A program made the translations under genes and the position numbers. DNA of 64,000 nucleotides from Iphione sp. A-MEVVRFRX5 (Eukaryota): assembly GCA_976226885.1 (NCBI GenBank), contig OZ320319.1:91822001-91886000 (forward strand). The letters run 5' to 3'. The notes under the pieces were generated by a model. It saw nothing but the letters and a program-made list of their open reading frames with translations, ran no database searches and had not been told where the DNA came from. Below are positions 1 to 41,100 of this stretch, one piece after another. Position 1 is the first letter of the stretch, and every line of letters begins with the position of its first letter.

Positions 1-499
1 GAAGATTCACACAAGTGTAATGTCTTCTCCTGTCTGGAGCCCGGTCTATTCTGTGATCTACTTTGTAGTTCTCTCTACTTATTTTTCCTCTTTGTAGCTC
101 TATAATACTAGTTTTCTTATTTTATATATCATAGACTGGTTTTTCTCCTAATTGAGGGAACTTATTTTTGTAATCAATTTCCTGTCTGATAGTTTATATT
201 TCGGTATTGACTTTTTCATCGGTTATTTTTGAGGTGTTGTTTGATACATTGGTTCAATAACCATTTGAGACGTTTAGACTTATGCATCACTTTTATCAAG
301 GTCACTTACTTGAGAGGGTTGGCACAACAGCATCATTAAACCTCTTCTAGTTTCTCCTCTAAAATTCACTGCCTTTCATTTTCTCGAAGAAACAGACAAT
401 TCCATGGCTTTGTCCTTTTGGAACATGATCTTTCATCATATTAATTCTTTTGATTTTGGTTTTAACTCTTTACTAGGCTGGTCAGATGTAAGATCCTGT

Positions 500-11630: not shown

Positions 11631-12678
11631 ACTTACCTTTCGAAACCTTCATCCAGACTGCGCGAAAAAAGTCAGAAAGCGTCTATACGCATGCGCACGA
11701 TCCAAAGATGCGGGAAATACCAAATTAGCATACATTAGCATATCGCGCGACAATGATGACATCAGCCGCACCATCCAGCCCGCCACCCTGGATACACTGG
11801 AGACGGTGACGGCGACGGCGGCGGTGGCGGCGGCGGCGGCGGCTGCAACTGCTATCACTGACACACTGCCAAGCACTCCATTGGTTCTGACATGCATGCT
11901 CACGAAAAGACACAACCTAAACAAAAATCCAATAACTTCACTGTCCTAGACAAAATAAAAACAAACAAAAATACATATATTCCAAAAACGAACAACTACA
12001 TGGCACTGTCAAACACACATGAGCGGTTACCAAATCGAACGGTACCATGCCGGTCCTACCAGATAACAAATGGGCAGAAAAAAAAAGACGACCAAATCCG
12101 AACGGAAATCCAGATAACGGAACATCACCGCCAATGACGGCCTGGCTGGCAACTAAAAAAAAAAACAAAAACAAAAACAAAAAAACAACTACATGGCACT
12201 GTCAAGCACACATGAGTGGTGACCAAATCGAACGGTACCATGCCGGTCCTACCGGATAACAAATGGGCAGGAAAAAAAAAGACAACCAAATCCGAACGGA
12301 AATCCAGACACCTGATGATAGAAGACACTATGGCCTCATCTCAAATGGTACCACGCTGATACAACCAGATAAAAGTCCTATAAATCCTATACAACCAGAT
12401 AAAAGAACATCACCGCCAAGGACGGCCCCCCCCCCCAAAAAAAAAAGACTAAAAATGACTATCACTTAATAATAATAATCACAAACACAAAGAACTATAA
12501 CAATAATAAATGCAAATACAAACAGGCATCGTCCCTCATGCCGTTAAGGCCGCGCACGGCACGAGCACGATGCCAACTAAGAAACACGTCCTTACCTGAT
12601 GAAAACTAGATGCAGACTGCGCGAAAAAGTGAAAAATGCGCTTACACGCATGCGCACGATGCAAACAGGCGGGAATTT
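11631..12678 (-). promoter_or_regulatory. two copies of a promoter/first-exon-like unit of the Helitron
   Basis: 11631-11718 and 12591-12678 share gactgcgcgaaaaa...cgcatgcgcacgat...gcgggaa (NRF1-like CGCATGCGCA). Each is followed on the minus strand by a G|GTAAG donor. A (GGC)n tract lies at about 11804-11843. Confidence 0.4.
11991..12310. repeat. tandem duplication of about 125 bp
   Basis: acaactacatggcactgtca...ggtaccatgccggtcctacc...ccgaacggaaatccaga occurs at 11991-12117 and 12184-12310. Confidence 0.9.
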
Positions 12679-13739
12679 TACCCGCCAACTGGAACCCTGG
12701 TCACCGTCCAGGACGTAAAAATGATGCTGAGAACAATTTCCCCAGAAAGAAATACATACATGTGAATAACATATATGTCGAATTGATCTAACGTTTGAAA
12801 TGCAAATGTTGAAATGTGCAAAAAAATTGCCTCGCACGATGCAACGACAAAACCAAGTCTCCGACCCTGAAAAAAAAATTACGACCCTGGCCACCATCCA
12901 CGGCTAAAAAAAATGACGTGAAGGGAAATCCCTGGTCCAGCTATATGTGCGAGTGAATTTAAACTATTTCAAAGTAAAGGCAATATTCAATACCTCAATG
13001 AGATAAATTTACCTGCAATCTGGGCTTTCCAATGCACTATTTAAAATCGAAAAAAAAAAAATCCAACCACGAAGCACTCAACTGTAAACAACGTCAGACG
13101 ACTGAAAACGACGTAAATGAAAAATGCCGCTGACGTCAAAATGCCATTGAGAAATACCCTAGTCCGCCCATGTGTTCCAAATTCCATTAAAAACAATAAA
13201 TATACAAATGATCGCCACATATTACAAAAACTGCGAATATCATTAAAATCTTTCAAAAAAATTCCCATCAACTAACTGAAAACAGGGCGTGGGTCCCAGT
13301 CATCGATACGCTAAACGAGGGCGTGGGTAGCAGTCCAAGAAACATCCCCGCTTCGATGGAATCTTACGATCGAATTTACACAATGTACGTATAAACCTAC
13401 GCCTACACCTCCATATAATATATGAAATTCAGGAGAGAAGTCCCTAAATATGTCAAAATCAATATCTAAAAGGGTCTAATCTCTACCAATTTTAATGAGC
13501 AAAAATCGAATCGACACGTATCCACCATTTTGAATGAGCTTTTTCACAGTAAATCTCCCAGAATCCATTGAGGTCGAACCGGATTTCCGAGACGATGCCT
13601 TTTTATATAAGTAGTGTAATTAAACCACAGAAGGTTTCACACAAAATCCGTTATATAGTTGACTACTAGAAACAAAATTTCATTGGTTAAAGCAATTTAT
13701 ACTGATGTTTTAAAAATACATCAGATATTTGAAATACAT

Positions 13740-14302
13740 AGAATCGAAGGCGATGTCCTACGGCCATAGATATTTTTCCACAGTTGACCGTCCTGAAGGG
13801 TCTTGATTAATCTCTGGATAATGTTGATGATAGGTGCATGAGCGATGTTGCCAAGCATTGTCAAGACATTTTCTTTTTCAGAAAAATGTTAGAGCACTTA
13901 TGATGCCGAGTTCATTCATGATGAAAAATCATATGATAGGTGTTTCTGTAAAGGAAAACAATTGAAGCACTCAGTAAACAAAACAGTTATTCTCCTAAAA
14001 GCCATGATGAATGACTGTCAAGCCTTCATAAATCTCAGAAACACCAAGTGCTTGCATTATAGACTAAATAACTGATGTGAAGAATTATATTACGGTAATT
14101 GGCCACATATTTTGAAGGGCAGACAAAGTGACCTCTGAAGGGTCCACCACGAGATTCTTAGGTTTCCATGATAAGTGCCATTTTTTGAATATTTGTAAAG
14201 ATTCAATAATGCTAGGGGTGTCTTCATCGTTAATAACAAATGCACCTACTACAATATAAGTTCATTTACTATAACACATAGGAAAAAAGTAGGAGCTGGT
14301 AC
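13740..14302 (-). pseudogene. MULE-like transposase, upstream exon (DDE core region), degraded
   Basis: After the acceptor ctctccag (14302) it reads TFFLCV..YIVVGAFVINDEDTPSIIESLQIFKKWHLSWKPKNLVVDPSEVTLSALQNMWP, then SEKENVLTMLGNIAHAP...LWKN. This is collinear with the 1535 exon across the Helitron. Confidence 0.7.
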
Positions 14303-15329
14303 CTGGAGAGAATGTACAATGTATAATTAATCTGCAATTATTCTTGAGACTATATTAAATTGAAAAATTCATAAAATTTCATCAGGCTTTTTTTTCGAAT
14401 CTGATACAAGTTGGCAAATCTCTAACAAAATGCAGTCAAATTCAGATATTCTAATTATAAAAAGCAACTAAACAAAATGAATATTTGAGAGATATTCGTA
14501 AGAATGATTTGTGGACAGAAATAGAAATTATTTGGGTCTTTTGTCTTACCATTCGGGTATGTGATGTACCAAATTCCCTTGACCACTTCACATTAATGTT
14601 ATAGCATTTAAATATCTCAGCAAGCAGTATTGAGTATCTTCATACTAGTAACGCCAAGTTTCACAGTATAAAGTCAAGGTCAAAACTGAAGTCAGAGAAG
14701 GCAAGGAAGGTAAAAGCACACATGTGTACTGAAGGAAATTGAAGAAACCTGGAGCTTGGAACCGTGTCCTGGAGCTTGGAAAGAGATTACAGGAACCAGT
14801 CGACTGGGACATCTTTTGGTTAAATGACAGTTGTTTGAAATTGTTCCAGTAGTGTTGATTGACTGCCCAATGATGACAGGAAACTACTACATGATGCGCG
14901 GTCGGCTCAACCAGATAAGCGTGGCAGCATCATAGACACCCATGAACAACATAAGAGACAGTTATGTAATGCTTTTGCTATAAAATGTATCGTATTGTAA
15001 CAGATTCATGTGGTGGGTGAATGGAACGGGTGTGAAGAGAGAGGGGGTTTTATGTTATTGGCACAGTGTTGAATTGTTTCAACAAATAAGCTTACATAAC
15101 ATTGTCACACTGCCCGGATTGCAGATCCTTGACTACTTCTATGAGCCAGTCTGTAAAATAAATGGATCGTTCTACTAAGTACTATTTACAGTAATTCTGT
15201 TGGATTGAGCTAATAATTTTTGTTTCTTTATATTCATATTATTATTACCATTGTCATTATTTGTCTTCCAATAACAGCATTACTTACTCCTAAAATGCTT
15301 TACCACTGACCTGATTCGGGCCCAGCTGT

Positions 15330-23279: not shown

Positions 23280-24223
23280 GAGATGTGCCATTCCAGATGT
23301 AGCATACACTTGTCCGAAAGCAGTGTCTTTCAATTGTTTTGGCCCAGATATCAGGTAGAAGATTGGAATCCAGTGAACCCAGCAAATTGATATCAATTCC
23401 CTGGGTCAGCTCGGTTCTGCAAGGAATATCATAGGATGAAAGCCAAGCCATAACAAAGTAGAAATAGTAAAGTACAAAGTAAAGATGAACATCATATACT
23501 AGTGTAAATAATTTAAAACCAAGGAAATTATCTGGGAGAGTAACTTATGTGTTGTCCACATATGTCTCCTGCAGTGGCTTCTTCTTACGCATGTCTTTGG
23601 CCGGGTTATAAAAGGTCATCCCGACCTTTGGGCCTGGTACAATCTTAGGACCCCTTGGCTGATCCCAGATCTGCTGGGTTGAGGTTGAGGCAGCCCGGTC
23701 AGGGGTATCCACATACCCGTCCAGTTGCCATTTCCTCAACGTCAGCACCAGGCCCACCACAAGAGCACCAGCCATGCAACCTAAAGGCAAAAACAATAAT
23801 CAATATAGTACATATTTAAATGAAATGGATGTTTGTTAAGATGTAATAAGTGCAGTGTGTATTTTACAAATGTAGCCCTTACAGACATGGTCAAACTGTT
23901 TTTAGGAAAATGAAAATAATTTACCAATAATACACTAGCTAAACAAATATTTACCCTATAGAGCAGGTGCAGGTGGGGTAGGTTATGGCCATCTTCTTCA
24001 CAGTTATGCGTATTGTGTGCGGGGCCTTTGTCTTTCGCATACTGCGATAGCACTTAGCCCGCATAGCTAATGTCGATCCTTCTTTGTAGAGTTCTACATC
24101 GAAGAAGTAGTGCTCTCTCTGGAATTTGCGCCCATGGATTACCTGCTCGAATTTTGGGCGCGGCTTGATGAACGACAGCCCAAATGCCTTCGGCAAATCT
24201 GTAAGGTAGCCCTTTCCAGACAT
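23280..24223 (-). pseudogene. N-terminal exons 1-3 of a second ISL2EU-type SWIM/exonuclease gene, truncated
   Basis: Exon 1 (24223-23955): LTDLP..AKCYRSMRKTKAPH..CTCSIG. Exon 2 (23780-~23550): LHGWCS[fs]VVGLVLTL..STSTQQIWDQPRG..YVDN, with the donor mutated. Exon 3 (ending 23280): YLISGPKQLKDTAFGQ. Exon layout matches 26881-28606. No YqaJ exon was found. Confidence 0.75.
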
Positions 24224-27200
24224 GCTGAGTGACTCACTGTGTGTTGACAGGAGGCAGGAGATTACAAGAATCAAGAGGCAACAAGAAAATCCCAAAGCAC
24301 TATAAACTTATCAGATGGTATTTCATAAGTTTAATTAAATAAATTATTTTTTAGTTCATATGAAACCCATTAAAAATTAGATTCATGAAAACTTAGGCAA
24401 CATAAAAATGTCACTCGCATGCTGAGGTCGCCAGTCACGCCCAACCGCCCGATCACCAGAGAGCGGCTGTTCTAAGCAGTTGTGACTTATACACGCTCTT
24501 CTCTTAGTGACTTGATCACGGGTTACCCTAAAATACCACAGCAAACCAACTCTGCATAGGTTAAACATCATTTGAGTTTATTCCAGTTAGTCAAAGTGAC
24601 AGAAAAATAGAACATCGACCTTCCACACGGTGAGCATTTGGAAAACCACGTCGTCTGCACAGGAAAGTTGTTACTATGAAGGCTTCATCTAAGTTACCTT
24701 ATCAAGGATTACCATGAAATGACAATCAATCCGACACAAGATGAATTTTTCATCATATAAAAGTTTATTAGTGACAGTCAAAGTAACAAAAAAAGGGATT
24801 TTCAGCTTTTTTGCATGCAGAACATCGGCAGATGAGGTAGGACAACTTTTCTAGCTTTTCGATGTCACTAAATGTACTTAAAACGCTTTTTTTCAGGGAA
24901 TTTTTAAACAACTAAGTTAAACTTACTAATTTTCAGTGGTATTGACATATGCATATTACCCAAGCAAAATATAGCATAACATTTACGACTACCTGTGCGA
25001 ATTTGTGTATTATAAAATTTTTGGTAAGTTTTGCTTGAAGGTTGCAAATAATGGGATAATGATCAGGGTTCTCTACATACTGAAATGTTAATATTTCGTT
25101 GTATTTCTCTGTAGTTTGGTGCAGACCTGGGAGGAGATTGTCACACTTATGTTTTCCACCATCGCGGACATTTGTGAATGATGTTATAACGCTCCAGCAA
25201 CTGGTCAGCCAGGTCGACACCACCCATGAATTGGTTGTATTCATGGATGGCTGCTGGCTTCCTTACCATGATCGCCCGGTGTCCCCCCTCAGCTGTTTTC
25301 AAGTGCCTCCTCACCATAACATACTTGTCACTTGCATGGATTGTGATAACAATGCACACAGGGCTGTTATCCTTCCATTGTTGACATAACAATGCCCCAT
25401 CTCTGACATAGCGGGAGTCTCCACGTTTGGCGGTTTTCTGCCATTGTTTGTCTTTCAGTATCTGAAATGGGTAAAAAAATGTGTATTTATCAATTTCTGG
25501 TATGGTTGGATACCTAGTGATGAAATTCTGGAACAATAGTACTCCTAGATGCATGTAAGTGTACTTCACTAGAGATAAATGGTTTTACCTCTGGAAATCC
25601 ACGACGACAAGTTACTGAAGTTACACAAGCAGGTGTACTCCTCAACCATAAGTGTTCGACTAGTGCGATGGAGGTACAAAAATTGTCAAAAAAAAGATGG
25701 TAGCCCTGGTCAAGGTAGTCCTTTGCCAGACAATTGACAACATCAAATCCTAACCCACTTTTCGATGGCTTCTCACGGCGACCTGTGTAGACACTGTTGT
25801 GAAGCAATAGTAGAAGTATTATTGACTGAATGATGCACCGGTTGTTTTTTTTAAGGGAAATTGAAATGGTTAATGCTGTGTTTATGTTCTATTTTAGAAA
25901 TTTATTGGAGGGGTTTGCATAATAAAAAAAGTAATTATGGTTCTCCAAAAGGGAAATATGATATACTTGTAAAACGTACCTGAAATCAACAGTATATCCT
26001 GAGACAGAGTCACACAGGCACCAGACTTTATAACCAAACCTGATAGGTTTTGCCGGCATATACTGTCTGATGCCCGATCGTCCCTTTGAGCGGACCATCC
26101 TTTCGTCTATTGATACTTTCTCTTTGATTGGTACATAGCCTTACACGTTCTCTGCATGTGGTCCAGGAAGGGTCTCACTTTCGTCAGCTTGTCACTTGCA
26201 TCCTCCTTTGAAGGATCACTGACATGCAACATACTCCCAACGGCTTTGTATCTGGAAATCATGATTGGTCATAATTTTACATGCATTCTGATGGCATTCT
26301 ATGTGCTTGTTAAATCAATACCACGGCTACATTGCAATGTAGTACAAATTACATAAGCATACAACAACTAAGGCATTACTCACCTTGTTCTTGACATAAA
26401 TCGGCAGGCCTATCCATTGGAATAAAGAATAATCAAACCAAGGTAGCGTTTCAGTTCCTCAACAGTGACTTCCTCCCATGTGCCAGTTGGACCTGAATAA
26501 GTGGGCTTATCCTAGATTGTCATCCAACCATAAAGGTTTGTGTTGGCACAGATAATCTGGAAATGTTAGAATATAAATGAGTTTTACAAATTGCTATGAT
26601 TGTGCAATATATATAAAATGCATTGAATAAGACATACAAACAAATTGTAATATTCCATTGCATCAGCTAGAGTCAACAAGAAGCATTAGCAATCCTTCAC
26701 CTGTAGCATTTCTTGGGTCATGAAGAGTCCAAAAAAGTTGATCGCCCATGTGAATGCTCGCATTCCATGTGTGGTCACCATGTCAGAGAAATTCACCGAT
26801 CGCTTCTCGCGAGTTAACCACGCCCACCGCGAAACGTCACAGACACGTGCTTCCGGCATAGACAAACAAACCCATCCAAAATGGCGTTGCATAGGCCGAA
26901 GACTGCGTTACTCACTGATCTGCCGCAGGGTATGAATCCAAAATGGATGCCCCATAAGCCTTCTTCTCGGCAGATAGTCCGCGCGACAGCTTTTGTCACG
27001 GGCTGTTTCGTACATGACGTGTCTCTGACATTTCTGGAAGCAGGAATTGAGGTTTTTGCTCGCTGCTACCGCAGCCAGCGGCGACGGAAGAAGCCCCACG
27101 AAGTGGGCCTGGACATAGGTGACAGTAAAGTCACATTCTGCCACTGTTCCTGCACAGCTGGGTAAGTGTCACGGTCTTTTATAAATTCTGTGGTATCTAT

Positions 27201-27259
27201 AGATATTATGTGTTGTATCTGTAATGTTTTATTCAACTGTCACATTCGCATTTAGCAAG

Positions 27260-27712
27260 CGGAGGCTGTACTGTCACCGCCACCATGTGCTGTCAAGCCC
27301 ACTGCTTCGTAGGTCTGCGCACACTTTGCCAAGGTCGAACTGTCACTGTTGCTGATAAATACTAGCCATATCTAAGTGTATGAGGCTTCTCTAATAATTT
27401 ACTGAACTGTCATGTTTGTGTCACGTTCACATTTTACGAACGGAGGCTGTACTGTCACTGCCACCATGTGCTGTCAAGCCCACTGCTTCGTAGGTCTGCG
27501 CACACTTTGCCAAGGTCGAACTGTCACTGTTGCTGATAAATACTAGCCATATCTAAGTGTATGAGGCTTCTCTAATAATTTACTGAACTGTCATGTTTGT
27601 GTCACGTTCACATTTTACGAACGGAGGCTGTACTGTCACCGCCACCATGGGCTGTCAAGCCCACTGCTTCGTAGGTCTGCGCACACTTTGCCAAGGTTGA
27701 ACCTGTCACTGT
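27260..27712. repeat. 181-bp tandem repeat, about 2.5 copies, in exonuclease intron 1
   Basis: cggaggctgtactgtcac... starts at 27260, 27441 and 27622. Confidence 0.95.
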
Positions 27713-28726
27713 CAGTATGTGTTGTTATATTCATCTGTAGTTGTAGAGTCATATTAAATGTAACCAGCAGTGTGTCCTCTCCTGTGTTGCCTGCATACCT
27801 GTGTTTCACTTTGCCATTTGCTGTCCCTCTTTAATTTCAGGATTGCAGGAAACTGTGCCAACACTCTTGCCGTGGTGCTTGCACTGGCAGAGTGGCAGAA
27901 GCTGGGGTTCTCTCATGCCCCTCAGCCTCTGTCGTGCACCTCACTCCCACAGGTTTGGGACAAACCCCGGTGCAAGAAACCACTGCCAGAATCTGCAACC
28001 GGGGTGTCATTTGCGAAGCCGACCACAAAGGACCGTAAGTGGAAACCACCCACTGCTACTTTTGTAGACAACAGGTAAGTACAGAACAATGATCCCTTAT
28101 GTTCAGTGTTAAATTACTTGATTTTCTCATTTAACTGTTTGGACTGTTTCCTTTCATCTTCATGTTATCATTTTATGGTTCTCATTGACAGTTACTGGTG
28201 TTACAGCTGCAATACAAGGTAACATATTCTGTAAGCTCTTGTTACATGGCAATTAGGTCAATGTTATAAGAAATGATATCTGAGGATATTTATTTCTGAC
28301 AGATTATCGGTGTTGTCTCCATTCTACAAACATGGAATTATATATGAAATGTGCTATAGAAAAAAATAGAATATTTCTGATTATGAAATTCGTATTCTAA
28401 TTTGATTGCAAAATAGGAATTCATCTATGTACTTTAAGTATTAATTGTTTTCCATATATTATCCCCAGGACTAAGGCCTCCAAGCACCTCCGCTTCGATG
28501 CCCTGCTGGACATTGAGGGAGAAGTTCGTACCTCCTCCAGGGGCCTCATGTTGTGGTGGACACTGTTTGTGGTCCTGCTTACATGGGCAGCATAATGAGC
28601 TACCAGGTACGTTTTGGATATGAATAGGTATATGAAATCTGACATAGTATAGGAAATAGTTGTATTTATAAAATGCACTGTAAGACTCGGATAGAGTTGT
28701 TCAGTATTTAATGGAGAAATCTCAGT

Positions 28727-30603
28727 TTGAATTTTAATGTTACAGTTCCAGGAGTTGACCCCCTCTGTACTTGTCAGGGACGCACCTCTGACGTCGTTAA
28801 AGTTGAATGTTACAGTTCCAGGAGTACACCCCCTCTGTACTTGTCACAGACGCACCTAGGACGTCCTCAGAGTTGAATGTTACGTTTCCAGGAGTTGACC
28901 CCCTCTGTACTTGTCACGGACACACCTCGGACGTCCTCAAAGTTGAATGTTACGTTTAAAGGAGTTGACCCCCTCTGTACTTGTCAGGGACGCACCTCTG
29001 ACGTCGTTAAAGTTGAATGTTACAGTTCCAGGAGTACACCCCCTCTGTACTTGTCACAGACGCACCTAGGACGTCCTCAGAGTTGAATGTTACGTTTCCA
29101 GGAGTTGACCCCCTTTGTACTTGTCACCGACACACCTCGGACGTCCTCAAAGTTGAATGTTACGTTTAAAGGAGTTGACCCCCTCTGTACTTGTCAGGGA
29201 CACACCTCGGACGTCCTCAAAGTTGAATGTTACGTTTCCAGGAGTTGACCCCCTCTCTACTTGTCTCGGACGCACCTCGGACGTCGTTAAATTTGAATGT
29301 TACAGTTCCAGGAGTTGACCCCCTCTGTACTTGCCACAGACGCACCTCGGACGTCCTCAAAGTTGAATGTTACGTTTCCAGGAGTTGATCCCCTCTGTAC
29401 TTGTCACGGACACACCTCGGACGTCCTCAAAGTTGAATGTTACGTTTCCAGGAGTTGATCCCCTCTGTACTTGTCACAGACACACCTCGGACGTCCTCAA
29501 AGTTGAATGTTACGTTTCCAGGAGTTGACCCCCTCTGTACTTGTCACGGACACACCTCTGACGTCCTCAAAGTTGAATGTTACGTTTCCAGGAGTTGACC
29601 CCCTCTCTACTTGTCTCGGACGCACCTTGGACGTCCTCAGAGTTGAATGTTACAGTTCACGGAGTTGACCCCCTCTGTACTTGCCACAGACGCACCTCAG
29701 ACGTCCTCAAAGTTGAATGTTACGTTTCCAGGAGTTGACCCCCTCTGAATTGTGACGGACACACCTCGGACGTCCTCAAAGTTGAATGTTACGTTTCCAG
29801 GAGTTGACCCCCTCTGTACTTGTCACTGACACACCTCGGACGTCCTCAAAGTTGAATGTTACGTTTCCAGGAGTTGACCCCCTCTGTACTTGTCAGGGAC
29901 GCACCTCGGACGTCCTCAAAGTTGAATGTTACGTTTCCAGGAGTTGACCCCCTCTCTACTTGTCAGGGACACACCTCGGACATCCTCAAAGTTGAATGTT
30001 ACGTTTCCAGGAGTTGACCCCCTCTGTACTTGTCACGGACGCACCTCGGATGTCATTAAAGTTGAATGTTACGTTTCCAGGAGTTGACCCCCTCTGAATT
30101 GTGACGGACACACCTCGGACGTCCTCAAAGTTGAATGTTACGTTTCCAGGAGTTGACCCCCTCTCTACTTGTCACGGACACACCTCGGACGTCCTCAAAG
30201 TTGAATGTTACGTTTCCAGGAGTTGACCCCCTCTGTACTTGTCAGGGACGCACCTCGGACGTCCTCAAAGTTGAATGTTACGTTTCCAGGAGTTGACCCC
30301 CTCTGTACTTGTCACGGACGCACCTCGGACGTCCTCAAAGTTGAATGTTACAGTTCCAGGAGTTGACCCCCTCTGTACTTGTCACGGACACACCTCGGAC
30401 GTCCTCAAAGTTTAATGTTACGTTTCCAGGAGTTGACCCCCTCTGTACTTGTCACGGACACACCTCGGACGTCCTCAAAGTTGAATGTTACGTTTCCAGG
30501 AGTTGACCCCCTCTGTACTTGTCACGGATGCACCTCGGACGTCGTTAAAGTTGAATGTTACAGTTCCAGGAGTTGACCTCCTCTGTACTTGTCACGGACG
30601 CAA
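28727..30603 (+). repeat. 70-bp minisatellite array, about 27 copies
   Basis: Unit aagttgaatgttacgtttccaggagttgaccccctctgtacttgtcacggacacacctcggacgtcctca; the period of 70 is seen at 29761 and 29831. Confidence 0.97.
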
Positions 30604-30656
30604 CCCGGAAGCACTTGAAACAGGGTCTGGTGGTTCAGGGTCTGGTGGTGTGTCTC

Positions 30657-33600
30657 TTAGTCTTCCTGGGCTTCCTCACAATCTCCTATCAAGAGTGGCT
30701 TGAATGTGGACAAGTAGTCACAGACAGCCCAGACCTGGTTCAAGGTCGCTGTGCCTGACAAGTCCAAGATGTTACTGAGGATTTGCCACTTCTTGATGCG
30801 GTTTATGGCCCTCTCAACATGCACCCGGTGCTTCGCGATGTCCTGTGTCTCGGACACATCCTGCCCGGTCATCTGAGCACCGGTCCTGGCAAATGGTGGT
30901 ATGTTGAGTCGAAGGCCATAATGCCACAGATCGTCTTCAATGAGGAAGCCCTTATCCACCATCACCCCATCACCCGGCAGGAGATACCCGGACCTCAGCA
31001 GCTCCTCTGCCAGGTCGTAGAAGCCGCTGGCTCTGGTTATTTCCTTGTCGGATATCCCCCCCGTGAACAAGGTGGAGATAAAGATGATGGTACCACGGGG
31101 GTCACATCCGACCAAGGCCTTCCAGGTGTTGCTGGACTTGTAGTCCGAGTATGTCTGGCTCTGCCGGGTCAGGGATGATGGTCGCTGGGTCTTAAACTTG
31201 GTCCCGTCAAGAATCACCATTGTGCGTGGATACTCTGCGCGGAACTTCGGGGGCATGTTTGCAATGATGACGTCGCGGTGGGGGAACAGTGGCAGGCGAC
31301 TGAAGCGCTGGTACATATAATTCACCCACCCACCAAACATAAGCGACGCATCCTGTCCTGAGATTCCGTAACGATGCCCCAAGTCCTTGCATTGTAATCC
31401 AAGGCGCAGTCTGCTCAGCACTAGCAACAGCTGATCCTCAGCAGGTATTGTCACCAGGCATCTCACCTTATGGCTAAAGTGGATGGCGTCATAGACTTTC
31501 CCAGTGGGCACCAGAAACCTGAGCACACTGTTGAAAGTCTGCAACGTCAGTCCAGTGTAGTGGCCAATAAGGTCAGGGATGGGACTCCTGTTGACACTAC
31601 TTAAGCTCATCCTGTGAGCCTGTTGAGATCGAGCCCTGCTGCGCTGTGCTGCTAGCTGGGTTTGCAGACTGGCCTTTGCCCGGGCCATTCTCTCCATTTC
31701 AATGGAGAGTCTGGCAACCTCTGCCTGGGCTGCACGCAGGTCGTCCTTAAGGGCAACATTCTCGACAGTGACCGAGAGAACCTCCAAAGGATCAGCCCCT
31801 GTGAAAAGAGAACAATGTATTAGTCACTGTATGATTATAGTCAGTTATCAAGGGAATAGTCACATGCATCTATAATATAGTGTCAAATTTTCTTTGTAGG
31901 CCAAGTACATTGCTGAGTCGCAGGAGAAGACTGGACCCAATGCCCCCCTGGACCCATGTGGAGACATGGTGTTTCCACGGGACTTCGCCCGGGCACCGTG
32001 GATTACACTACCGCCATGGGATCCAGACGTGGCTCAGCGTGGCTGTCACACTTCCACAGGCTGTCCAGCTGGAGCGTGACACCGGTGGGCAGTCTGCGTC
32101 TCCGCTGTGGTGGGAGGAGCGGAGGCACAGGGTGACAGCCTCACATTTTGCCTCCATTATGAAGAGGAAGGCTGCCGTGTCACCAGCGTTCCTACGGAAC
32201 ACATTTACCCCCAAGCCCTTCAAGTCGGCGGCCACGCAGTATGGGACCAGCAGTGAAGAGGTGGCCCGGTTGGCTTTCCTGAGGACCCGGGCAGGAAGCC
32301 ACTACCACCATGTGGGGCTGGTGGTGAATCCGGCATTCCCTTTTCTTGCTGCGACTCCTGATGGCCATCTCTGCACCAAGGGCAAGACGGTCATCATGGA
32401 GATCAAGTGCCCATACTCTGCGAGGGACATGACCATCCCAGAGGCTTGCACCACCATCAAGAAGTTCTGCCTGGAACTGAAGGATGGGAAGCCTGTCATG
32501 TCCAGATTGCATGACTACTGGTTCCAGGTGCAGCGCCAGTTGCTGGTGACAGGTGCAGACTTCTCTACCTTCATAGTGTACACGGCAAGAGACCTCTTCT
32601 CAGAGGATATAGCCCCCTGCAGCGAGACAATGGCCCAGATGTTGTTAAAGCTGGGTGATTTCTGGCTGACCCATGGAAAGCCATATCTGGGTCAGCTTGC
32701 AGCTGAAGAGGCTGAGGAGGAGGAGCTACAGGGGGGGGAAGAGGTCTAATTCTGTCACACTGACACACCGACAACAACCACGGGGGTCAACTGGTGGAAC
32801 TGTAACATTCAACTCTGAGGACGTCCGAGGTGCGTCCGTGACAAGTACAGAGGGGGTCAACTGGTGGAACTGTAACATTCAACTCTGAGGACATCCGAGG
32901 TACATCCGTGACAAGTACAGAGGGGGTCAACTGGTGGAACTGTAACATTCAACTCTGAGGACGTCCGAGGTGCGTCCGTGACAAGTACAGAGGGGGTCAA
33001 CTCCTGGAAACGTAACATTCAACTTTGAGGACGTCTGAGGTGTGTCCCTGACAAGTACAGAGGGGGTCAACTCCTGGAAACGTAACATTCAACTCTGAGG
33101 ACGTCCGAGGTGTGTGCGTGACAACAACCACAGGGGTCAACTGGTGGAAACGTAACATTCAACTCTGAGGACGTCCGAGGTGTGTGCGTGACAACAACCA
33201 CGGGGGTCAACTGGTGGAAACGTAACATTCAACTGTAAGGACATCCGAGATCTGTCTCCGACGCAACCGTCTCCTTTATTGTCATTGTGACTATTCCTGG
33301 GATTACTTACAATGACTTTGTGTCTGGCAGCCCTGACCAATACACTCTGCTGCTGCTGGAGGTGCCCTTGCTGCTGCTGGAGGTGCCCCTGCTGCTGCTG
33401 CTGGAGGTGCCCCAGCTGCTGCTGCTGGAGGTGCCCCAGCTGCTGCTGCTGGAGGTGCCCTTGCTGCTGCTGCTGGAGGTGCCCCAGCTGCTGCTGCTGG
33501 AGGTGCCCTTGCTGCTGCTGCTGGAGGTGCCCCTTCTGCTGCTGCTGGAGGTGCCCCAGCTGCTGCTGCTGGAGGTGCCCCAGCTGCTGCTGCTGGAGGT

Positions 33601-36600
33601 GCCCTTGCTGCTGCTGCTGGAGGTTCCCCAGCTGCTGCTGCTGGAGGTGCCCCAGCTGCTGCTGCTGGAGGTGCCCTTGCTGCTGCTGCTGGAGGTGTTG
33701 GCCCTTCTCCTTGGAAGGTAGGCTGCCTGTTTCCAATTGATTGTACACATACTAATACTAGTGGGTCTCCACAAGGGTCACTTATGGGAATCATATGGTT
33801 TGTCTTGGTTTTTTTTTTATAAAGACTTAACATCAGTTTAATACCTTATGACATTACTCTTCATCTCAGATGTTACTTTCATTTAGAGAAAAAGCAACTG
33901 CATATAGGTAGGTAAACTTGATAGACTGGCATGGAAAGGAGAAACATTAATTCTCATTTACTTCCAGTAATATTTCTATTCACCTTATGATATTACTTTT
34001 CATCCAAAATATTACTAATATTTCTATATATAAAGACAAGAAAGTAGTCTTCTTTCAAATACAAGCCTCTTTTATTCAGGATTAAATATTTTTAATATAT
34101 ATATATAACAAGTGTAAACAGTAATAACAAATTTAAAAGAATCAAAATATCAACAAGTGTAAAAAAATAAAACAAAAATAAAAAACCGAACTGTCTTGGT
34201 TAAATAAGGTGCTAACGTTAAATAAGGTGCTTCCATGTCCTCTCAGTCCTCTCATTGGAAGAAGCCTATGAGGGCCTTCAGGATATCACCATGCAGGTCT
34301 TCTCCTGCTGCTGGTGTTGCTGTTGGTGCTGTTGCCGCTCCTGTGGTGGCGCCGCGGCACACTGCAGGCTGGAGGAGGACCATCACATCCTCCTCCAGGA
34401 CCTCCCACACCCCATCCTCATCTTGGTATAATCTTGGGGTGTGGGAGGCCTCCGCTGCCTCCTCCTCTTCATCGTCCGACAGGACGATCACGGGCTCCAG
34501 TGGCCATTCCAGCGGAGGCCACTGGATGGCCGGCCACTGGAGCTCCGGCTGTGGCTCAGGCTCAGGCTGGTGTTGCAATTTTAAGGCTGCCACCTCCTCC
34601 TCCACCAGCACTATCTTCTGCTGCATCATCCGCAGCTGCTCGTGGAGGAGGGCTACCACCTTATCGTTGGCTCCTGCCTCCTGGTGGCGGATGAGGGTAT
34701 ATGCTTGTTCTGAAATAGAACAAAGAGTGTGCGGTGTATGTGACTCATATTTACGAGAAGGGGCATTGGCTAAAAGTGCAACATTCCACCTGAAATATGT
34801 GGGTGGGGTGTCCATGACATTAACAACAGGGGGGACACCTACTACAAGTGTAACATTCAGCAAAAACAACGTACGGTGTATGTGAGTCATATTTACAAGA
34901 AGGGGCACCAGCAACAAGTGTAACATTCCACCTGAAATACGTGGGTGGGGTGTCCGTGACATTAACAACAGGGGGGACACCTACTACAAGTGTAACATTC
35001 AGCAAAAACAACGTGCGGTGTATGTGAGTCATATTTACGAGAAGGGGCACCAGCAACAGGTGTAACATTCCACCTAAAAAACGTGGGTGGGGTGTCCGTG
35101 ACATTAACAACAGGGGGGACACCTACTACAAGTGTAACATTCAGCAGAAACAACGTGCGATGTATGTGAGTCATATTTACGAGAAGGGGCACCAGCAACA
35201 GGTGTAACATTCCACCTAAAATACGTGGGTGGGGTGTCCGTGACATTAACAACAGGGGGGACACCTACTACAAGTGTAACATTCAGCAAAAACAACGTGC
35301 GATGTATGTGTCAGTCACATATATCATGAGGGGCATCTAGAATGAGGTTATATTATAAGTCTAACTTACCAGCAGCCTTGCGCCGCGCGCGGCGGAGGCG
35401 CTGCTTGGCTGCCTCAAGGGCATGGTAGCCCGCCTGCTGTTGCTTGTTGGCCCTCCACTTGGCCGTGCGTACTCTGCCAGGGGTGGGTTGACCACGTGGC
35501 ATCTTGCTGCAATGGAAAAGTCACACAACTGAGAACAGTCTTCAATAGCTGTTTTTTTTTTGTTGTTTTTTAAGCTTCTGCACTCACATCTGATGTAGTA
35601 GGGTGAGAGGAGTAAGATGTTCTTTGAATTTTCCAAAACAATACATAAATCAGCCAGTTATGACCAAAAATGTCTCCAACAATTTCATGTCAGTGGCAGT
35701 CTAAGCCAAGAAGTGAGCTGACCTACATTCAACTTGTTATTTTCATCAAATATTTCAGGATTGAGCTGCTAATGTATGTTAAACTACTGTCCGGTATGTG
35801 CTATGTACCTATATGCACACTATGACTATGATTCTGGACAGAGAACATCAAAATAGCACAAGATTTTCCAAAAAATTGATGAGTGAAATTAAAAGTTACT
35901 TACACTTTCTGCTGACGGGACAGATCTGGTTCTTTAATCCGGATTCAACCAGCCATGACTGGAAATCCATTTCCGGTGCAGTTTAAAAAAATGTTCGTAG
36001 GTGACAGTGTGGAGCTCAGAAATCAGTTACGTATGTCTGAGATGCTTTCCTGTCGCAAAAACCTTCTAAACCGTGACATAAATAATGATAATATGTTCAG
36101 GAATCAACTGTGACAGTTTCACCAAAAAATAAAAAATCTACACCCTGGAGCGATTGATTACTTCAGGGTCTCGCACGCTACTGTCAGGGACAGGCTAGGT
36201 CGGTCCGCTGGGCAGCTACCCTTGCCATAGAAAAACACTGCAAACAGACACTTTCATTCACGTGAACGTGACAAAATGAGAGATGAGTATAGAAGACATG
36301 TGTAAGAAATGACTGTGACAAGTACAGGTGAAAAAAACAATTCCATATGTCTGTGCGAGTAAAAACGTCACGGCCCATACGCAACTGTCAGCACCCACCA
36401 CCAGGACCGCTGTCACAACCTCCACCTCGCCCTCGAAAACCCTCCCGAAAAGAGACTTCCAGACATGCAAACGTGACAAAATGGGAGATGAGTATAGAAG
36501 ACATGTGTAAGAAATGACTGTGACAATTACAGGTGAAAAAAAAAATTCTATATGTCTGTGCGAGTAAAAACATCATGGCCCATACGCAACTGTCACCGAT

Positions 36601-37260
36601 TCGCTGCGGCGGTGCTCAAAACGGGACTGATACACACATCTCTACACATGCAGACTTGATGAGACCTGATATAAGTGGAAGAAAAATGGAGAACATAACT
36701 TACTTCGACTTTCTTCTTCTCTTTGGAGGAGGTGGAGCAGTGTGGGGTTTGGGTGCCTTGCTCACCGGCCTCACTCTAGGATTCACTACCCCGGCTGGCA
36801 GAGGGTCAGGGTAGTCGTCTGTTGGGCCATCGCCACCAACAAAATGCTGAAAGAAGACAAACTTTCCATTAAAATTTCATTATCAATTATTCTTTTCATT
36901 TCAATTATTTTTTCTATCACACATATAACTAGCATGACATAGATGACCTTCAAACTGTTAACAATGACAGTACTGACAGGTAGGATATCATGATTCACAC
37001 AAACTACACAGATATCACTTTCATCCAAATTATGTGTTATTAGACTAGACAGACATACTTACCTTGAAACAGACATATCTGTTGGTCTTGATTTTCTTCA
37101 CATTGAGTTTCTTGTGAGGCCGGCCACAGAGCTTGATCCACCTCATGCACTTCTCAAGCTCTGTGCCTGGTTTGGGGAAGGTCACCCAAGATAACCCTGC
37201 CATCCTCTCAGGGTACCTGCTATCATTCGTACATCCACCCCACTCGCAGTGTATAACCAT
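30657..37260 (-). CDS. THAP-HTH-DDE (HARBI1/DDE_Tnp_4-like) transposase, spliced
   Basis: Exon 1 (37260-37063): HCEWGGC..FPKP..WIKLCGR..YVCFK. Exon 2 (36846-36704) starts HF, completing the THAP C2CH finger. A candidate linker exon is 35506-35370. The last exon (31798-30657) has YTGL, LSRLRLG, ILDGT, MVDKGF, HVERAI. Phases 0/2/1 give an open 539-aa frame; the linker exon assignment is uncertain. Confidence 0.8.
32770..33245 (-). repeat. inverted array of the same 70-bp minisatellite, about 6.5 copies
   Basis: gggggtcaactggtggaactgtaacattcaactctgaggacgtccgaggtgcgtccgtgacaagtacaga is the reverse complement of the 28727-30603 unit. Confidence 0.95.
33350..33695. repeat. 24-bp CAG-rich minisatellite (GHLQQQQL/Q on the minus strand)
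   Basis: About 14 units of ggaggtgccc(cag/ttg)ctgctgctgct. Several frames are open, as expected for such a repeat. Confidence 0.9.
34252..35506 (-). CDS. candidate basic + coiled-coil + acidic ORF (two exons) inside the transposase intron
   Basis: Exon 35506-35370 (MPRGQPTPGRVRTAKWRA..AAKQRLRRARRKAA, phase-1 GTAAG donor) joins in frame to exon 34709-34252 (acceptor tatttcag; EQAYTLIRH..LLHEQLRMMQQKIVLVEEEVAALKLQ..SDDEEEE..stop). GC-rich and stop-free. Confidence 0.5.
34735..35310. repeat. 142-bp tandem array, about 4 copies
   Basis: Repeat-derived ORF starts at 34980, 35122 and 35264 give a period of 142. Each unit has two halves beginning gtaacattc. Confidence 0.93.
36266..36597. repeat. 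duplicated segment of about 125 bp (period about 205)
   Basis: acgtgacaaaatg.gagatgagtatagaagacatgtgtaag...gcccatacgcaactgtca occurs at about 36266 and 36471. Confidence 0.85.
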
Positions 37261-37600
37261 TTTGGGCTGTGACAAGTACACGGAATTAATAAAAAAGGCG
37301 AAAACTGTCTCGGACGATGCGTACGCGTGGTGCTGTCAGGACACTGTCACGGATGAGAAGGGCTTTGTTTGTCTATACCGGAAGCACGTGTACCGATTTC
37401 GAAACTGGCGCGCCAAACTAAGTCGTGCGCGCTGATTGGCCGAGACGCCTGTCACTCACGGAAAAGCGATCGGTGAATTAGGTCCTGGTGGTTTCCTTGG
37501 TCGAAAGGGTGGCAATGTTGGAACAATATCCTTATTGACGCCAGTAGCATCACTGCAGTATGGAATAAATGCATATATTTCTCATTACTGTAGTGCTTAT

Positions 37601-37668
37601 TACTGTAGTACAGTGGTTAGCGCATTTGCTTTTGGATCACATGGCCGGGGTTCGATTCCCCCACCAAC
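37601..37668 (+). other. tRNA-like (Pol III A/B box) sequence, antisense in intron 1 of piggyBac A
   Basis: cagTGGTTAGCGC (A box) ... ggGGTTCGATTCCC (B box). No complete cloverleaf. Confidence 0.65.
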
Positions 37669-38189
37669 CCAACAAATCAACAGTGATGACGAATCTATGT
37701 ACACATCACCTAGCATCATAATATTTCTACTTAATATCTAATTTAGGTATCAGTAGTTCTGTAATACCTTCAACATACGCTAAATAATTGTAGAAGGAAC
37801 TTAAACATATACTTTACTCACTTCACAACTTGCGGACTGTCCCCGGCTGGCCCTATGCCATGGGACATTACAACTTCATCATCTTCTTCCTCGATTCCTA
37901 TATTTCCATCGAAAAGTTCATCCAGCTCATCCTCTTCACCACTAGACATACCACTATTCTCATCGTTTTCTAATGCATTCTTTCCAACTCCACTCTCAAG
38001 GAGATCTTTGGCAATCTGAGCGGTCGATCTAAGTCGTCTAGCAATGATGAATCGTGACATGACAACATTCCGTCACCCATAGTTACGTCGATATATGTCA
38101 TAATCGACCAAACACAATGCAACCATGTTTTCCATATCAAGCAGATTGTCTTTATTCCAAATTTACAAATACCAGCTCATATACTGCTA

Positions 38190-41100
38190 AAATATACACC
38201 AAATTGTCATCAGTCAAAAATGACCGATTTTTCTATGGGTGGTCCTTATAGGGTTATATTTGGGTAACCTGGTTGGTTCCTTAGGAGTATAGCTAGAATG
38301 TCCACAACAATGTTGAACAAGAGGGGTGAGGCTGGACAGCCCTGATGGACCCCCTCCAAGGGGGAAATATTTTGTGGTATACCCATAATTGAGAATACAT
38401 GCTTCAGATTGAAAGTACAAAGATTTGACCATGTTGGTGAAGTACGGTCCCACACCAAAAAGGTGTAAGGCATATAGCAAGAAGTCCAAGCTTACATTGT
38501 CAAATGCTTTTGCAATGTCCATGGCTAGAATTGCGCCTGGGGTATTCTTATGTTGCCAATAATAAATTGTCTTGAATTATTCTATGAACAGTTGATATGG
38601 AACGTTTGGGCAAAAACCGACTTGTGTAGAAGACATATAGTGGGGGAGGGATTTCTTTAGTCTGGAAGCCATTAGAGAGGAGAATATTTTGTAATGGACG
38701 TTAAGGAGGGCAATTGGGCACCAATTCTCTGCATATCTCTTGTCTTTGTCTGCTTCTGGTAACAGTGAAATAATACTTTGTCTTTTGGTGGGGGAGAGGG
38801 AACCTTCCTGGAGGGCATACTGCAGGGCCTGAAAAAGAGGGGTTTGAAGGGAGGTCCGAAATTGCCTATAAAATTCAGTAGAGAGTCTGTCATTCCCGTG
38901 GGTCTTCTCCAGGCGCCGTTGTTTAAGGGCTTCCCTGATTTCTGAACGTGCGATTTTTCTTTCCAGGAGGTCATAGTGGTCTTTGGATAGTTGAGGGACG
39001 TTTGCTTCCCATCCAGGGGGACCTAGGAAGGAGAAAGAGGGAAGGGAGGGGAGAAAAACCGGGGCCTCGGTATCTTTGGGAGAAATGGTCATGGAGGTTA
39101 GCGTTAATTACTTTAATATTTGTGAGGAGTACCCCATTTTGAGATATAAGTGAAGAGATTGGTTTGTACTGACTTTTGACTTTTTCCATTCTGAGGAAGT
39201 ACCTTGACAGCTTTTCACCTGATGTAAACCACTTCAATTTAGACCTGAACAGGGTTGAAGCTCCTTGCTGAGTCTGAATATCCTTAACCTGGATTTTAAT
39301 TAACCAGGCAACAGTGTAGTCAGACCCAGGGTCCGACAGATCAATATCGGCCATTTTGGAGTCATACTCTGCAAGCAAGTTCCTCACCTGTTGATTTTCT
39401 TTTGTTTTTCTTACGAGCATAGTCAGTGGTGAAGCGGGCAATTGAGAATTTTTCAAAGTCCCATGCTGTCAGTGGGTTACTATTTTGTACGTTCGCAGTT
39501 TTATACCACTCTGGAATAGATTTGTTAATTATTTCACAATATGCATCATCATGTAGTAAATGGTTGTCAAATTTCCGTAGTCCTTTTCCCTTAAGGGTCA
39601 GTTCAATATGAAAAGTACGAGATAAAGCTCTGTGGTCAGTATGTGCCACTGTGATTAATTTAATACACGAAACCTGTGGAGAGATGTCCTTGGATACCAT
39701 TATATAGTCTATTCAAGAGGCTTGTGTGATCCATCTATTTTGTCAGGTAAAACCCTACCCTTTTCCTGGTGTACAGGACCAAGTGTCAATAAGATCATTC
39801 ACTGCTAAAACCTCTTTGAGTTTCTTGGTTGGCTGATGGAGATTCGTTGTTGCGAGTCGTCAGCAGGTTGAAAGGCTGGGAGTTGGTTAGTCATATACGT
39901 TTGAATTTCACCTGAAATGTTCAGTTGTAATTCCTGAAAAGATTGAGGTGGTAAGTATACAGACAACACATGAAACACAGAGCCCAGAAGAGATAATTGA
40001 ATATGTATAAAATGACCCTCTGCATTACTATAGACCTTCTGAACCTGGATAAACTCTGATGTTTTGAGAAGTACCAATGTACCCGCTCTCATGGTCGAGC
40101 CGTAGGAGGAGAGCCAGTCACCTTTCCATTGGGATGACCAGAACTGGACGTCTGCTAGTGAGCTGTGAATATCTTGGAGGACGATTAAATCATAGTTGCC
40201 CAAGATGGCCAAAATGGCCTGATGTTTGACTGGATCATGTAGCCCTCTAACGTTGAGAGTCAGCAGGCATAAGTAGGGGAGCATAACCAAGAAGTTATGC
40301 TGGATTCTTGGCGGGTGTGTCATCCTCTGCCAGCCAGGTATGGATGTCCATTAGGTGACGTCCTACATAGTTCTTGTCCTTCCACATCCTTATATTCAGG
40401 GCGTCTCCTGCCCAAAAGGCAGTCTAATGCCCCATTTCTTGTTCACTGAGGCCCAGGAGAGGTGTTTCCGTTTGTAGAAGGAGTTGCTTTGTTGATTCGT
40501 CTGTCCAAATTCTATGCTTGAGTGCTGGGACCAGAATAGCAGACTCGTGGTTGTCTTCTGGGTCATATTCTTGTAGGGTGTATAGAAGCTGGAAGAGTTG
40601 TCTTTTGCTTTCCGCATACATGGCCTTATAGCGGAGAGCATGCAGACAGAGGTTGTCAGCAAGGCGAATGACCAAATATTGGGGGAGTGATTCATAGTTT
40701 CCATCTCGCACCAGGAGATGTGTGGGATATTCCAGTGAGAATGGATGGTTGGCTCCAGCAAATAAATAGACAGCATCACTTTCCTGTGTGGAGAGAGTAC
40801 CGGGGCATAGTAGATATTGAAGTGTGTGCCAATTTTTACTATCATAGGAGTGCCCATCCAGTCTGATAGTAAAGTCTTTGACCCTAACTGAGGTAAACTG
40901 TTGGGTCTCTCTGTCAGCTCTGGCAATCCCATGTAATACATCCAGCCTACCCCTGTGTTCCACCTCCATATCTTCCCTGATCCATATCCTTAGCCTTTTA
41001 TATTTTTTCAATTCCATTTTATGTTGCCTGTTTATGATTCTGTATTGATTTAAACCTGGCTATTGCTGGTCTGTTTTTCAGATTATCAGATCCTAGCCTG

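Follow-up and report, generated by a model that had tools for sequence, protein, structure and literature searches.

Reciprocal interleaving of the transposase and exonuclease genes in a probable ISL2EU transposon from Iphione sp. and in a clade of related elements

Overview of the element

A 64,000 nt stretch of the genome of Iphione sp. A-MEVVRFRX5 (contig OZ320319.1, positions 91,822,001 to 91,886,000 of the forward strand), referred to here as the window, contains two antisense genes whose exons are threaded through each other. The region that carries them is very probably one copy of ISL2EU, a cut-and-paste DNA transposon of the PHIS superfamily, with the usual gene pair of that family in a reciprocally interleaved layout. 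On the plus strand the order is exonuclease exons 1-3 (+), the helix-turn-helix (HTH)/DDE exon of the transposase (-), the YqaJ exon of the exonuclease (+) and the THAP exons of the transposase (-). This block order had been put forward in the original prediction, and domains, tblastn exons and splice sites confirm it to the base. The assignment to the ISL2EU gene pair is upheld as well, a transposase with THAP, HTH and DDE domains and a YqaJ exonuclease both being detected.

In the gene model proposed here, each gene would start just inside its own end of the element with three short exons for a zinc finger module (THAP in the transposase, a SWIM-like finger in the exonuclease), and would end in a large catalytic exon (HTH plus DDE, or YqaJ) placed beyond the catalytic exon of its partner. 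The two large exons lie head to head, 101 bp apart, each of them antisense within intron 3 of the other gene. A comparison with other copies, proposed earlier as a check, finds the same crossed order and the same intron positions in loci of other species. The window element is an ordinary member of a crossed ISL2EU clade, with one of its two genes already broken.

Exon structure and the shared spacer

Full-length THAP-DDE and SWIM-YqaJ proteins from a protein collection were placed on the window by tblastn. The resulting exons and the spacer between the catalytic exons are as follows, with a slash at each splice point.

Exonuclease gene
26881-27161, plus strand: exon 1, with the ATG and the first half of a SWIM-like zinc finger; donor G/GTAAGT; tblastn with proteins P0125 and P0148
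27841-28074, plus strand: exon 2; acceptor tttaatttcag/G, donor CAG/GTAAGT; tblastn with five homologues, E down to 1e-17
28469-28606, plus strand: exon 3; strong acceptor ccccag/G at 28469, donor CAG/GTACGT after GSIMSYQ
31900-32749, plus strand: exon 4, with the CGDMVFP motif, YqaJ domain and stop codon; inside transposase intron 3

Spacer
31799-31899, both strands: 101 bp, back-to-back polypyrimidine tracts and AG acceptors for both genes

Transposase gene
37063-37260, minus strand: exon 1, with the ATG and the THAP zinc finger up to C-F-K, the final H lying in exon 2
36704-36846, minus strand: exon 2, with HF.GG.GP..YPDPLP and the PPPKRRRK motif; donor AA/GTAAGT; tblastn and splice sites
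35370-35506, minus strand: exon 3; acceptor ttccattgcag/C, donor CTG/GTAAGT, phase 1
30657-31798, minus strand: exon 4, with a coiled coil, HTH_Tnp_4, DDE_Tnp_4 and stop codon; inside exonuclease intron 3

The four transposase exons total 1620 nt and give an open reading frame (ORF) of 539 aa that is intact in the window copy and is laid out as a THAP finger, the basic PPPKRRRK stretch, a coiled coil, HTH and DDE. Exon 1 matches the THAP N-termini of eight homologues at 48-58% identity (tblastn). Its Pfam THAP score (37063-37260; E 6.6e-4) is 20.8 bits, under the 23.9-bit cut-off, because an intron splits the domain; the last H of the C2CH finger comes in phase from exon 2, and the transposase has the complete finger. 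The ORF at 30657-31787 (-) has Pfam matches to DDE_Tnp_4 (PF13359, E 6.6e-40) and HTH_Tnp_4 (PF13613, E 5.1e-11), and exon 4 is 45-47% identical to the matching exon of proteins P0002 and P0003. Candidates for the catalytic D, D and E are found in ILDGT, VDKGF and HVERAI of the translated model, and the conserved columns of alignment A1 include D197, D281 and E328.

On the opposite strand, the ORF at 31880-32749 (+) has the YqaJ domain (PF09588, E 5.6e-14), and the window exonuclease shares 44-50% identity with the YqaJ proteins that accompany THAP-DDE genes in other species. One correction to the earlier picture is that the gene is not intact in the window copy, in which two frameshifts are present. 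In exon 3, at about 28490-28526, the frame of the ATG from 28469 (RTKASKH...) runs into a stop and the conserved part is one frame over; a weak alternative acceptor at 28522 would skip this frameshift. In exon 4 the shift is between 31978 and 32024: CGDMVFP is in frame 31900, which stops after 59 codons, and YqaJ is in frame 31901. Since the exonuclease exons total 1503 nt, a multiple of three, the two frameshifts are of opposite sign. They may be real mutations or assembly errors. With the transposase ORF intact and the exonuclease twice frameshifted, the window copy could move only with exonuclease supplied in trans.

All mapped junctions of both genes have canonical splice sites. The two that define the crossing, 28606>31900 and 35370>31798, were named in the original prediction, and both are in phase. 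The first unites GS.(L/M)SY(H/Q) with CGD..FP, two motifs that are conserved in all homologues. The spacer was also described earlier as supplying the acceptor to head-to-head terminal exons on both strands, and a consensus acceptor is indeed present on each side (plus strand, ttctttgtag/G; minus strand, tctcttttcacag/G). The interleaved exon map agrees with the earlier structural reading that each pre-mRNA crosses the catalytic exon of its partner. The minimum obligatory antisense overlap, given before as about 2.1 kb, is 2093 bp (30657-32749).

Ends of the element and flanking sequences

The limits of the element are placed at 26793-37476 (10,684 bp) because of a 16-nt inverted match and an AT duplication at both ends. 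The paired features at the two ends are listed here, with the terminal inverted repeat abbreviated as TIR and the target site duplication as TSD.

26790-26805, plus strand: left end, A and AT (TSD 26791-26792), then the TIR TCACCGATCGCTT from 26793
37464-37479, minus strand: right end, TIR up to 37476, then AT (TSD), then T
26843-26870, plus strand: subterminal 28-bp motif ACACGTGCTTCCGGCATAGACAAACAAA, 10 nt 5′ of the exonuclease ATG
37364-37391, minus strand: inverted copy of the 28-bp motif, 103 nt 5′ of the transposase ATG

The match AATTCACCGATCGCTT is perfect over its 16 nt and pairs 26790-26805 with 37464-37479. Read inward, each end displays A, AT and then TCACCGATCGCTT, so that the TIRs are 13 bp long and the target reads A/AT/T; a target of this form with a 2-bp AT duplication is that of ISL2EU (PMC4482050). 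The window TIR begins TCACC, and TGACC is found at this position in the Dreissena polymorpha locus L001 and in contig L007 described below. The 28-bp motif (ACACGTGCTTCCGGYATAGACAAACAAA) occurs once near each end, with 27 of 28 bases identical between the inverted copies, where chance would be expected to give none. We infer that the paired motifs are inward-facing promoter elements or transposase-binding elements.

Just inside the TIR, a subterminal motif GCGAG(A/T)TAACCACGCCC is common to the window (26806-26832) and to the end of a distant relative (L007, 120-190). A tRNA-like stretch at about 37600-37690 adjoins the right end, and ARAGORN called no tRNA in the flank at 37400-37800. The ORFs on either side of the element, at 25147-25807 (-) and 38214-39456 (-), look by eye like fragments of a piggyBac transposase and a LINE reverse transcriptase. 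A second ISL2EU fragment, from another family, is present at 23283-24222 (-). It has exonuclease exons 1-3 only, is oriented away from the main element and is 24-43% identical to homologues across tblastn segments; outside the main element, no DDE or YqaJ partner for it was found within the window.

Crossed copies in other species

Loci of relatives were mapped in the same manner, with homologous proteins on the locus DNA. In Dreissena polymorpha (L001) the order is THAP exons (+), YqaJ exon (-), DDE exon (+) and SWIM exon (-), and two NCBI gene models of 511 and 492 aa overlap there on opposite strands at 12540-14611 (2.07 kb). The packing is close: each catalytic exon occupies about 80% of its partner's intron, as the DDE exon does in exonuclease intron 3, and the end of the YqaJ gene is 10 nt from transposase exon 3. 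The head-to-head spacer of this locus (13372-13506) is quasi-palindromic, with 63-nt arms that are 75% complementary.

The crossed order is also found in the hemichordate Glandiceps talaboti (L002), in Branchiostoma (L006), in the teleost Phoxinus (L005), where an insertion of about 6 kb interrupts the YqaJ exon, in a Logan contig (L008), and in the metagenome contigs L012, L013, L015, L020 and L028. The complete order together with back-to-back acceptors, as found in the window, is present in L001, L002, L005, L006, L008, L012, L015 and L020; the spacer between the acceptors is 186 bp in Dreissena and 70 bp in Glandiceps. The intron positions are shared as well. The exonuclease donor directly follows GS.L.Y(H/Q) in six crossed loci, and the position of the exon 3 donor is common to L001, L002, L005, L015 and L020. 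For transposase intron 3, the window, Dreissena and Glandiceps agree in both residue and phase (phase 1), and the intron precedes a PL(E/D).L...EN motif.

A related gene from Misgurnus, which nests beside the crossed copy of Phoxinus, has a last intron of 80 bp with no YqaJ exon; this exon has evidently been lost.

Two contigs were considered as spliced transcripts and set aside. Contig L011 (1306-2700), a candidate transposase cDNA, is genomic: its transposase exons 2-4 are fused, exonuclease exon 3 is antisense 1-42 nt past the transposase stop, and the contig ends before a YqaJ exon is reached. Contig L007 (Logan, 1743 bp) has an uninterrupted SWIM-YqaJ ORF of 485 aa. It also has a terminal-repeat-like ATTGACC with an upstream flank, and RNA and DNA are indistinguishable for its source run; it is not used here as splice evidence.

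Tail-to-tail copies and phylogeny

A second arrangement is seen in Ixodes hexagonus (L004), in which an intronless THAP-DDE gene of 506 aa is followed by a convergent exonuclease gene. The JGI contig L010 has a convergent pair like that of Ixodes, with 3′ ends that overlap by about 50 bp. A scan of metagenome contigs with the DDE alignment gave 80 loci, 45 of them tail to tail (THAP+, DDE+, YqaJ-, SWIM-), 5 clearly crossed and 2 probably crossed. The remaining 28, mostly on contigs that are too short, were unscorable. Locus L056 is among these; it was considered as possibly crossed and rejected, its DDE sequence being nearly identical to that of the tail-to-tail locus L071, and is read as a deletion derivative that lacks the YqaJ part.

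In at least 20 tail-to-tail loci THAP and DDE are within one uninterrupted ORF, and the tail-to-tail exonuclease ORF passes without interruption through the site of intron 3 of the crossed clade. These uninterrupted ORFs (L004, L010 and the metagenome loci) indicate that THAP and DDE form one protein, and SWIM and YqaJ another.

A DDE tree built from 78 distinct sequences places every one of the 13 crossed rows, together with three unscorable rows, in a single clade (SH-aLRT 99); the 38 tail-to-tail rows are all outside it. A tree of 9 sequences gives the same split with support of 100/99. Among the DDE sequences of these trees, the window transposase groups with THAP-DDE genes that have YqaJ partners. 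Since the crossed rows are in one clade and the tail-to-tail rows are all outside, the layout changed once on the tree, and the crossed, intron-rich layout is the norm of one ISL2EU clade. From the loci compared, this clade spans molluscs, hemichordates, cephalochordates, teleosts and the window genome, in at least four phyla.

The original prediction had allowed that the layout might already be the documented norm, or that other copies might simply be tail to tail. The sequence data support the former for one clade, while no description of it was found in the searchable literature; tail-to-tail copies do exist, but only in sister lineages. As to which layout came first, the tree is unrooted, and the crossed state is taken as derived and the tail-to-tail state as ancestral because the tail-to-tail lineages are deeper and more diverse and because their uninterrupted ORFs resemble bacterial insertion sequence (IS) ancestors. 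Bacterial IS elements are the ancestors of the superfamily (PMC4122938).

Tandem arrays in the introns

The window element is about twice the usual ISL2EU size because of intronic tandem arrays, which are listed below.

27238-27712, no strand assigned: 181-bp tandem repeat, 2.6 copies, in exonuclease intron 1 (TRF)
28727-30609, plus strand: tandem array of a 70-bp unit, about 27 copies, within exonuclease intron 3 and also 3′ of the transposase stop codon (TRF, blastn)
32782-33262, minus strand: about 7 copies of the 70-bp unit, in the opposite orientation to the array at 28727-30609, with 85-90% identity between the two
33347-33697, no strand assigned: 24-bp tandem repeat, 14.8 copies, in transposase intron 3 (TRF)
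34729-35335, minus strand: diverged array with a 142/72-bp period and about 65% identity to the 70-bp unit; its start is 35 bp past the donor of transposase exon 3

The inverted 70-bp arrays at 28727-30609 and 32782-33262 bracket a 2.17-kb core with both catalytic exons, and by pairing with each other they could enclose this core in a stem of about 480 bp in either pre-mRNA. They are not present in the crossed copies of other species compared (e.g., Dreissena, Glandiceps); thus the arrays are a peculiarity of the window family and not the cause of the crossing. An inversion between them was considered as that cause and rejected on the same ground, and also because flipping the core would leave each catalytic exon on the wrong strand.

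Transposase intron 3 also has an ORF of 242 aa at 34252-34980 (-), partly over the diverged array, with a coiled-coil-like stretch and no Pfam match.

Proposed origin of the crossed layout

The most likely origin of the crossed layout is duplication and loss. A central block of a tail-to-tail element would have been duplicated in tandem. This block would begin within the transposase coding sequence, immediately ahead of HTH/DDE, take in the 3′ ends of both genes and stop at the corresponding position of the exonuclease coding sequence. Its duplication would give the order THAP, DDE1, YqaJ1(-), DDE2, YqaJ2(-), SWIM(-). Both genes would still be functional at this stage through their outer copies, and the inner pair would already face each other head to head at the duplication junction. 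Each mRNA would be restored by splicing between the two copies of its breakpoint, from the first to the second. Once the outer copies had been lost, the crossed order would remain, with a short spacer and with two new introns where they are now seen.

Expression and alternative explanations

Transcription would enter from both ends, with the shared 28-bp motif upstream of both ATGs, and the partner's exon, present in antisense, would be spliced out along with intron 3. At least 2.1 kb must be transcribed convergently. After splicing, the two mRNAs have no overlap between their coding exons, so that complementarity is confined to an intron of one pre-mRNA and an exon of its partner, in the nucleus. 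Where a copy is compact, a 3′ untranslated region can also overlap the partner's exon 3 and could pair with it. Interference or double-stranded RNA (dsRNA) is likely to be a by-product of the layout and is not a demonstrated function.

Whether the crossed layout is itself a selected device for self-limitation, an idea raised in the original prediction, should also be considered, with polymerase collision, or small-RNA silencing fed by nuclear dsRNA, throttling the gene pair. This is a doubtful explanation, to which several features are nevertheless favorable: the layout has persisted, very tightly packed, in at least four phyla, as in the Dreissena introns filled to about 80%; the overlap of at least 2093 bp cannot be avoided; and the inverted 70-bp arrays that flank the window core could add a long RNA stem. 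However, tail-to-tail ISL2EU copies are more numerous and more diverse in the survey, so that crossing is not needed for persistence, and the coding exons of the spliced mRNAs are not mutually complementary. The conservation could also merely reflect that un-crossing needs a rare double rearrangement. A broader version would join the two histories: the interleaving would be a functional architecture so far not known from any transposon, would have arisen once, by a tandem duplication that made two introns, and would be kept because forced convergent transcription couples and limits the expression of transposase and exonuclease. We regard it as speculative and improbable. Polymerase collision, or nuclear dsRNA feeding small-RNA silencing, would be the limiting route, and the tail-to-tail sisters would serve as a natural control.

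It is far less probable that no crossing occurs at the RNA level, the DDE and YqaJ exons being independent genes transcribed divergently from the 101-bp spacer, and the exons for THAP and SWIM being separate or dead. Large ORFs head to head across a short spacer do resemble genes of a bidirectional promoter, in-frame ATGs are found within both ORFs, and the Branchiostoma NCBI model is the YqaJ exon alone (232 aa). Nevertheless, both exons start exactly at consensus acceptors with upstream donors that match in phase, the acceptor and donor sites are conserved in other phyla, conserved motifs span the junctions, and the Dreissena gene models join the exons. The principal counter-argument is that THAP plus DDE, and SWIM plus YqaJ, are single ORFs in the tail-to-tail relatives.

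A one-off rearrangement or assembly error at the inverted 70-bp arrays, raised in the original prediction, is scarcely credible: although arrays of 1.9 kb and 0.5 kb that bracket the core are hard to assemble, at least 10 independent loci of other species without arrays share the identical order, which already contradicts such an error, and a core flip would not un-cross the genes.

Several points should be weighed against the interpretation of the window as a crossed ISL2EU copy produced by duplication and loss. The TIRs open with TC instead of the usual GG, although ISL2EU TIRs are said only to "usually" begin with GG (PMC4482050), which makes GG typical rather than defining. The splice junctions in the window rest on splice consensus, reading phase, homology and the gene models of other groups. 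With the exonuclease frameshifted twice, this copy may lack expression of a working pair. In the window introns, tblastn detected no remnant of duplicated DDE or YqaJ sequence, and with the DDE tree unrooted the ancestral layout can be given only by inference. Lastly, no description of the crossed layout was found in the searchable literature, and it may already be recorded in Repbase Reports or be known to curators.

Gene annotation and significance

The crossing seems to defeat annotation pipelines and explains recurrent errors in the gene models of relatives. Two NCBI models hold half of the exonuclease: that of Glandiceps (L002, 15518-17872, 217 aa) has the N-terminal exons, and that of Branchiostoma is at L006 8001-8699. 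Residues 162-219 of a Ylistrum balloti transposase model (P0097) match the antisense strand of the YqaJ exon, at 32305-32481 (-) of the window, with 49% identity, as if one exon of this model had been taken from the wrong strand of the partner gene. The overlap itself is already displayed, implicitly, by the Dreissena RefSeq models.

ISL2EU, which is summarized as having "two ORFs", comes in two sharply separated architectures. One is compact and convergent with mostly uninterrupted ORFs, and the other consists of threaded four-exon genes and is kept in molluscs, hemichordates, cephalochordates and fishes. Together they offer a natural paired comparison for the question of whether obligatory antisense transcription regulates a transposon. 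Crossed ISL2EU is also a candidate case of two introns that arose from a single rearrangement.

Comparison with known systems

ISL2EU has been described as carrying "two ORFs" in a total of about 4.8 kb (Han et al. 2014, PMC4122938; 2015, PMC4482050). Gene overlap, introns and crossing are not mentioned in PMC4482050, PMC4122938 or PMC9179366; the words "overlap", "intron" and "opposite" are absent from the first, and "overlap" and "opposite" from the last. Reciprocal interleaving as a defining feature of an ISL2EU clade is apparently unreported. The window element is like the published ISL2EU in its transposase with THAP, HTH and DDE_Tnp_4, its YqaJ second gene, the AT TSD in an AATT target, the short TIRs and the animal host. 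It differs in having four exons per gene that are interleaved, a length of 10.7 kb and TIRs that start with TC.

The tail-to-tail ISL2EU copies (Ixodes hexagonus, the JGI contig and the 45 metagenome loci) encode, on opposite strands, the two proteins of the crossed copies with an unchanged order of domains. In contrast, their genes are convergent and not interleaved, THAP-DDE is usually one ORF, and the exonuclease is without intron 3.

PIF/Harbinger transposons are similar in having two genes, a related DDE transposase and a second element-encoded protein, and in Harbinger both proteins are required for transposition (as cited in PMC9179366). However, their second gene encodes a Myb/SANT DNA-binding protein and not an exonuclease, and their TSD is 3 bp. 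No report of reciprocal interleaving in PIF/Harbinger was found in the literature examined.

In host genomes, interleaved or nested antisense gene pairs exist in which exons of each gene lie in introns of the other and convergent transcription is forced. The partners in such pairs are unrelated, whereas here a single mobile element carries both as its functional pair, and the arrangement has been passed on whole across phyla.

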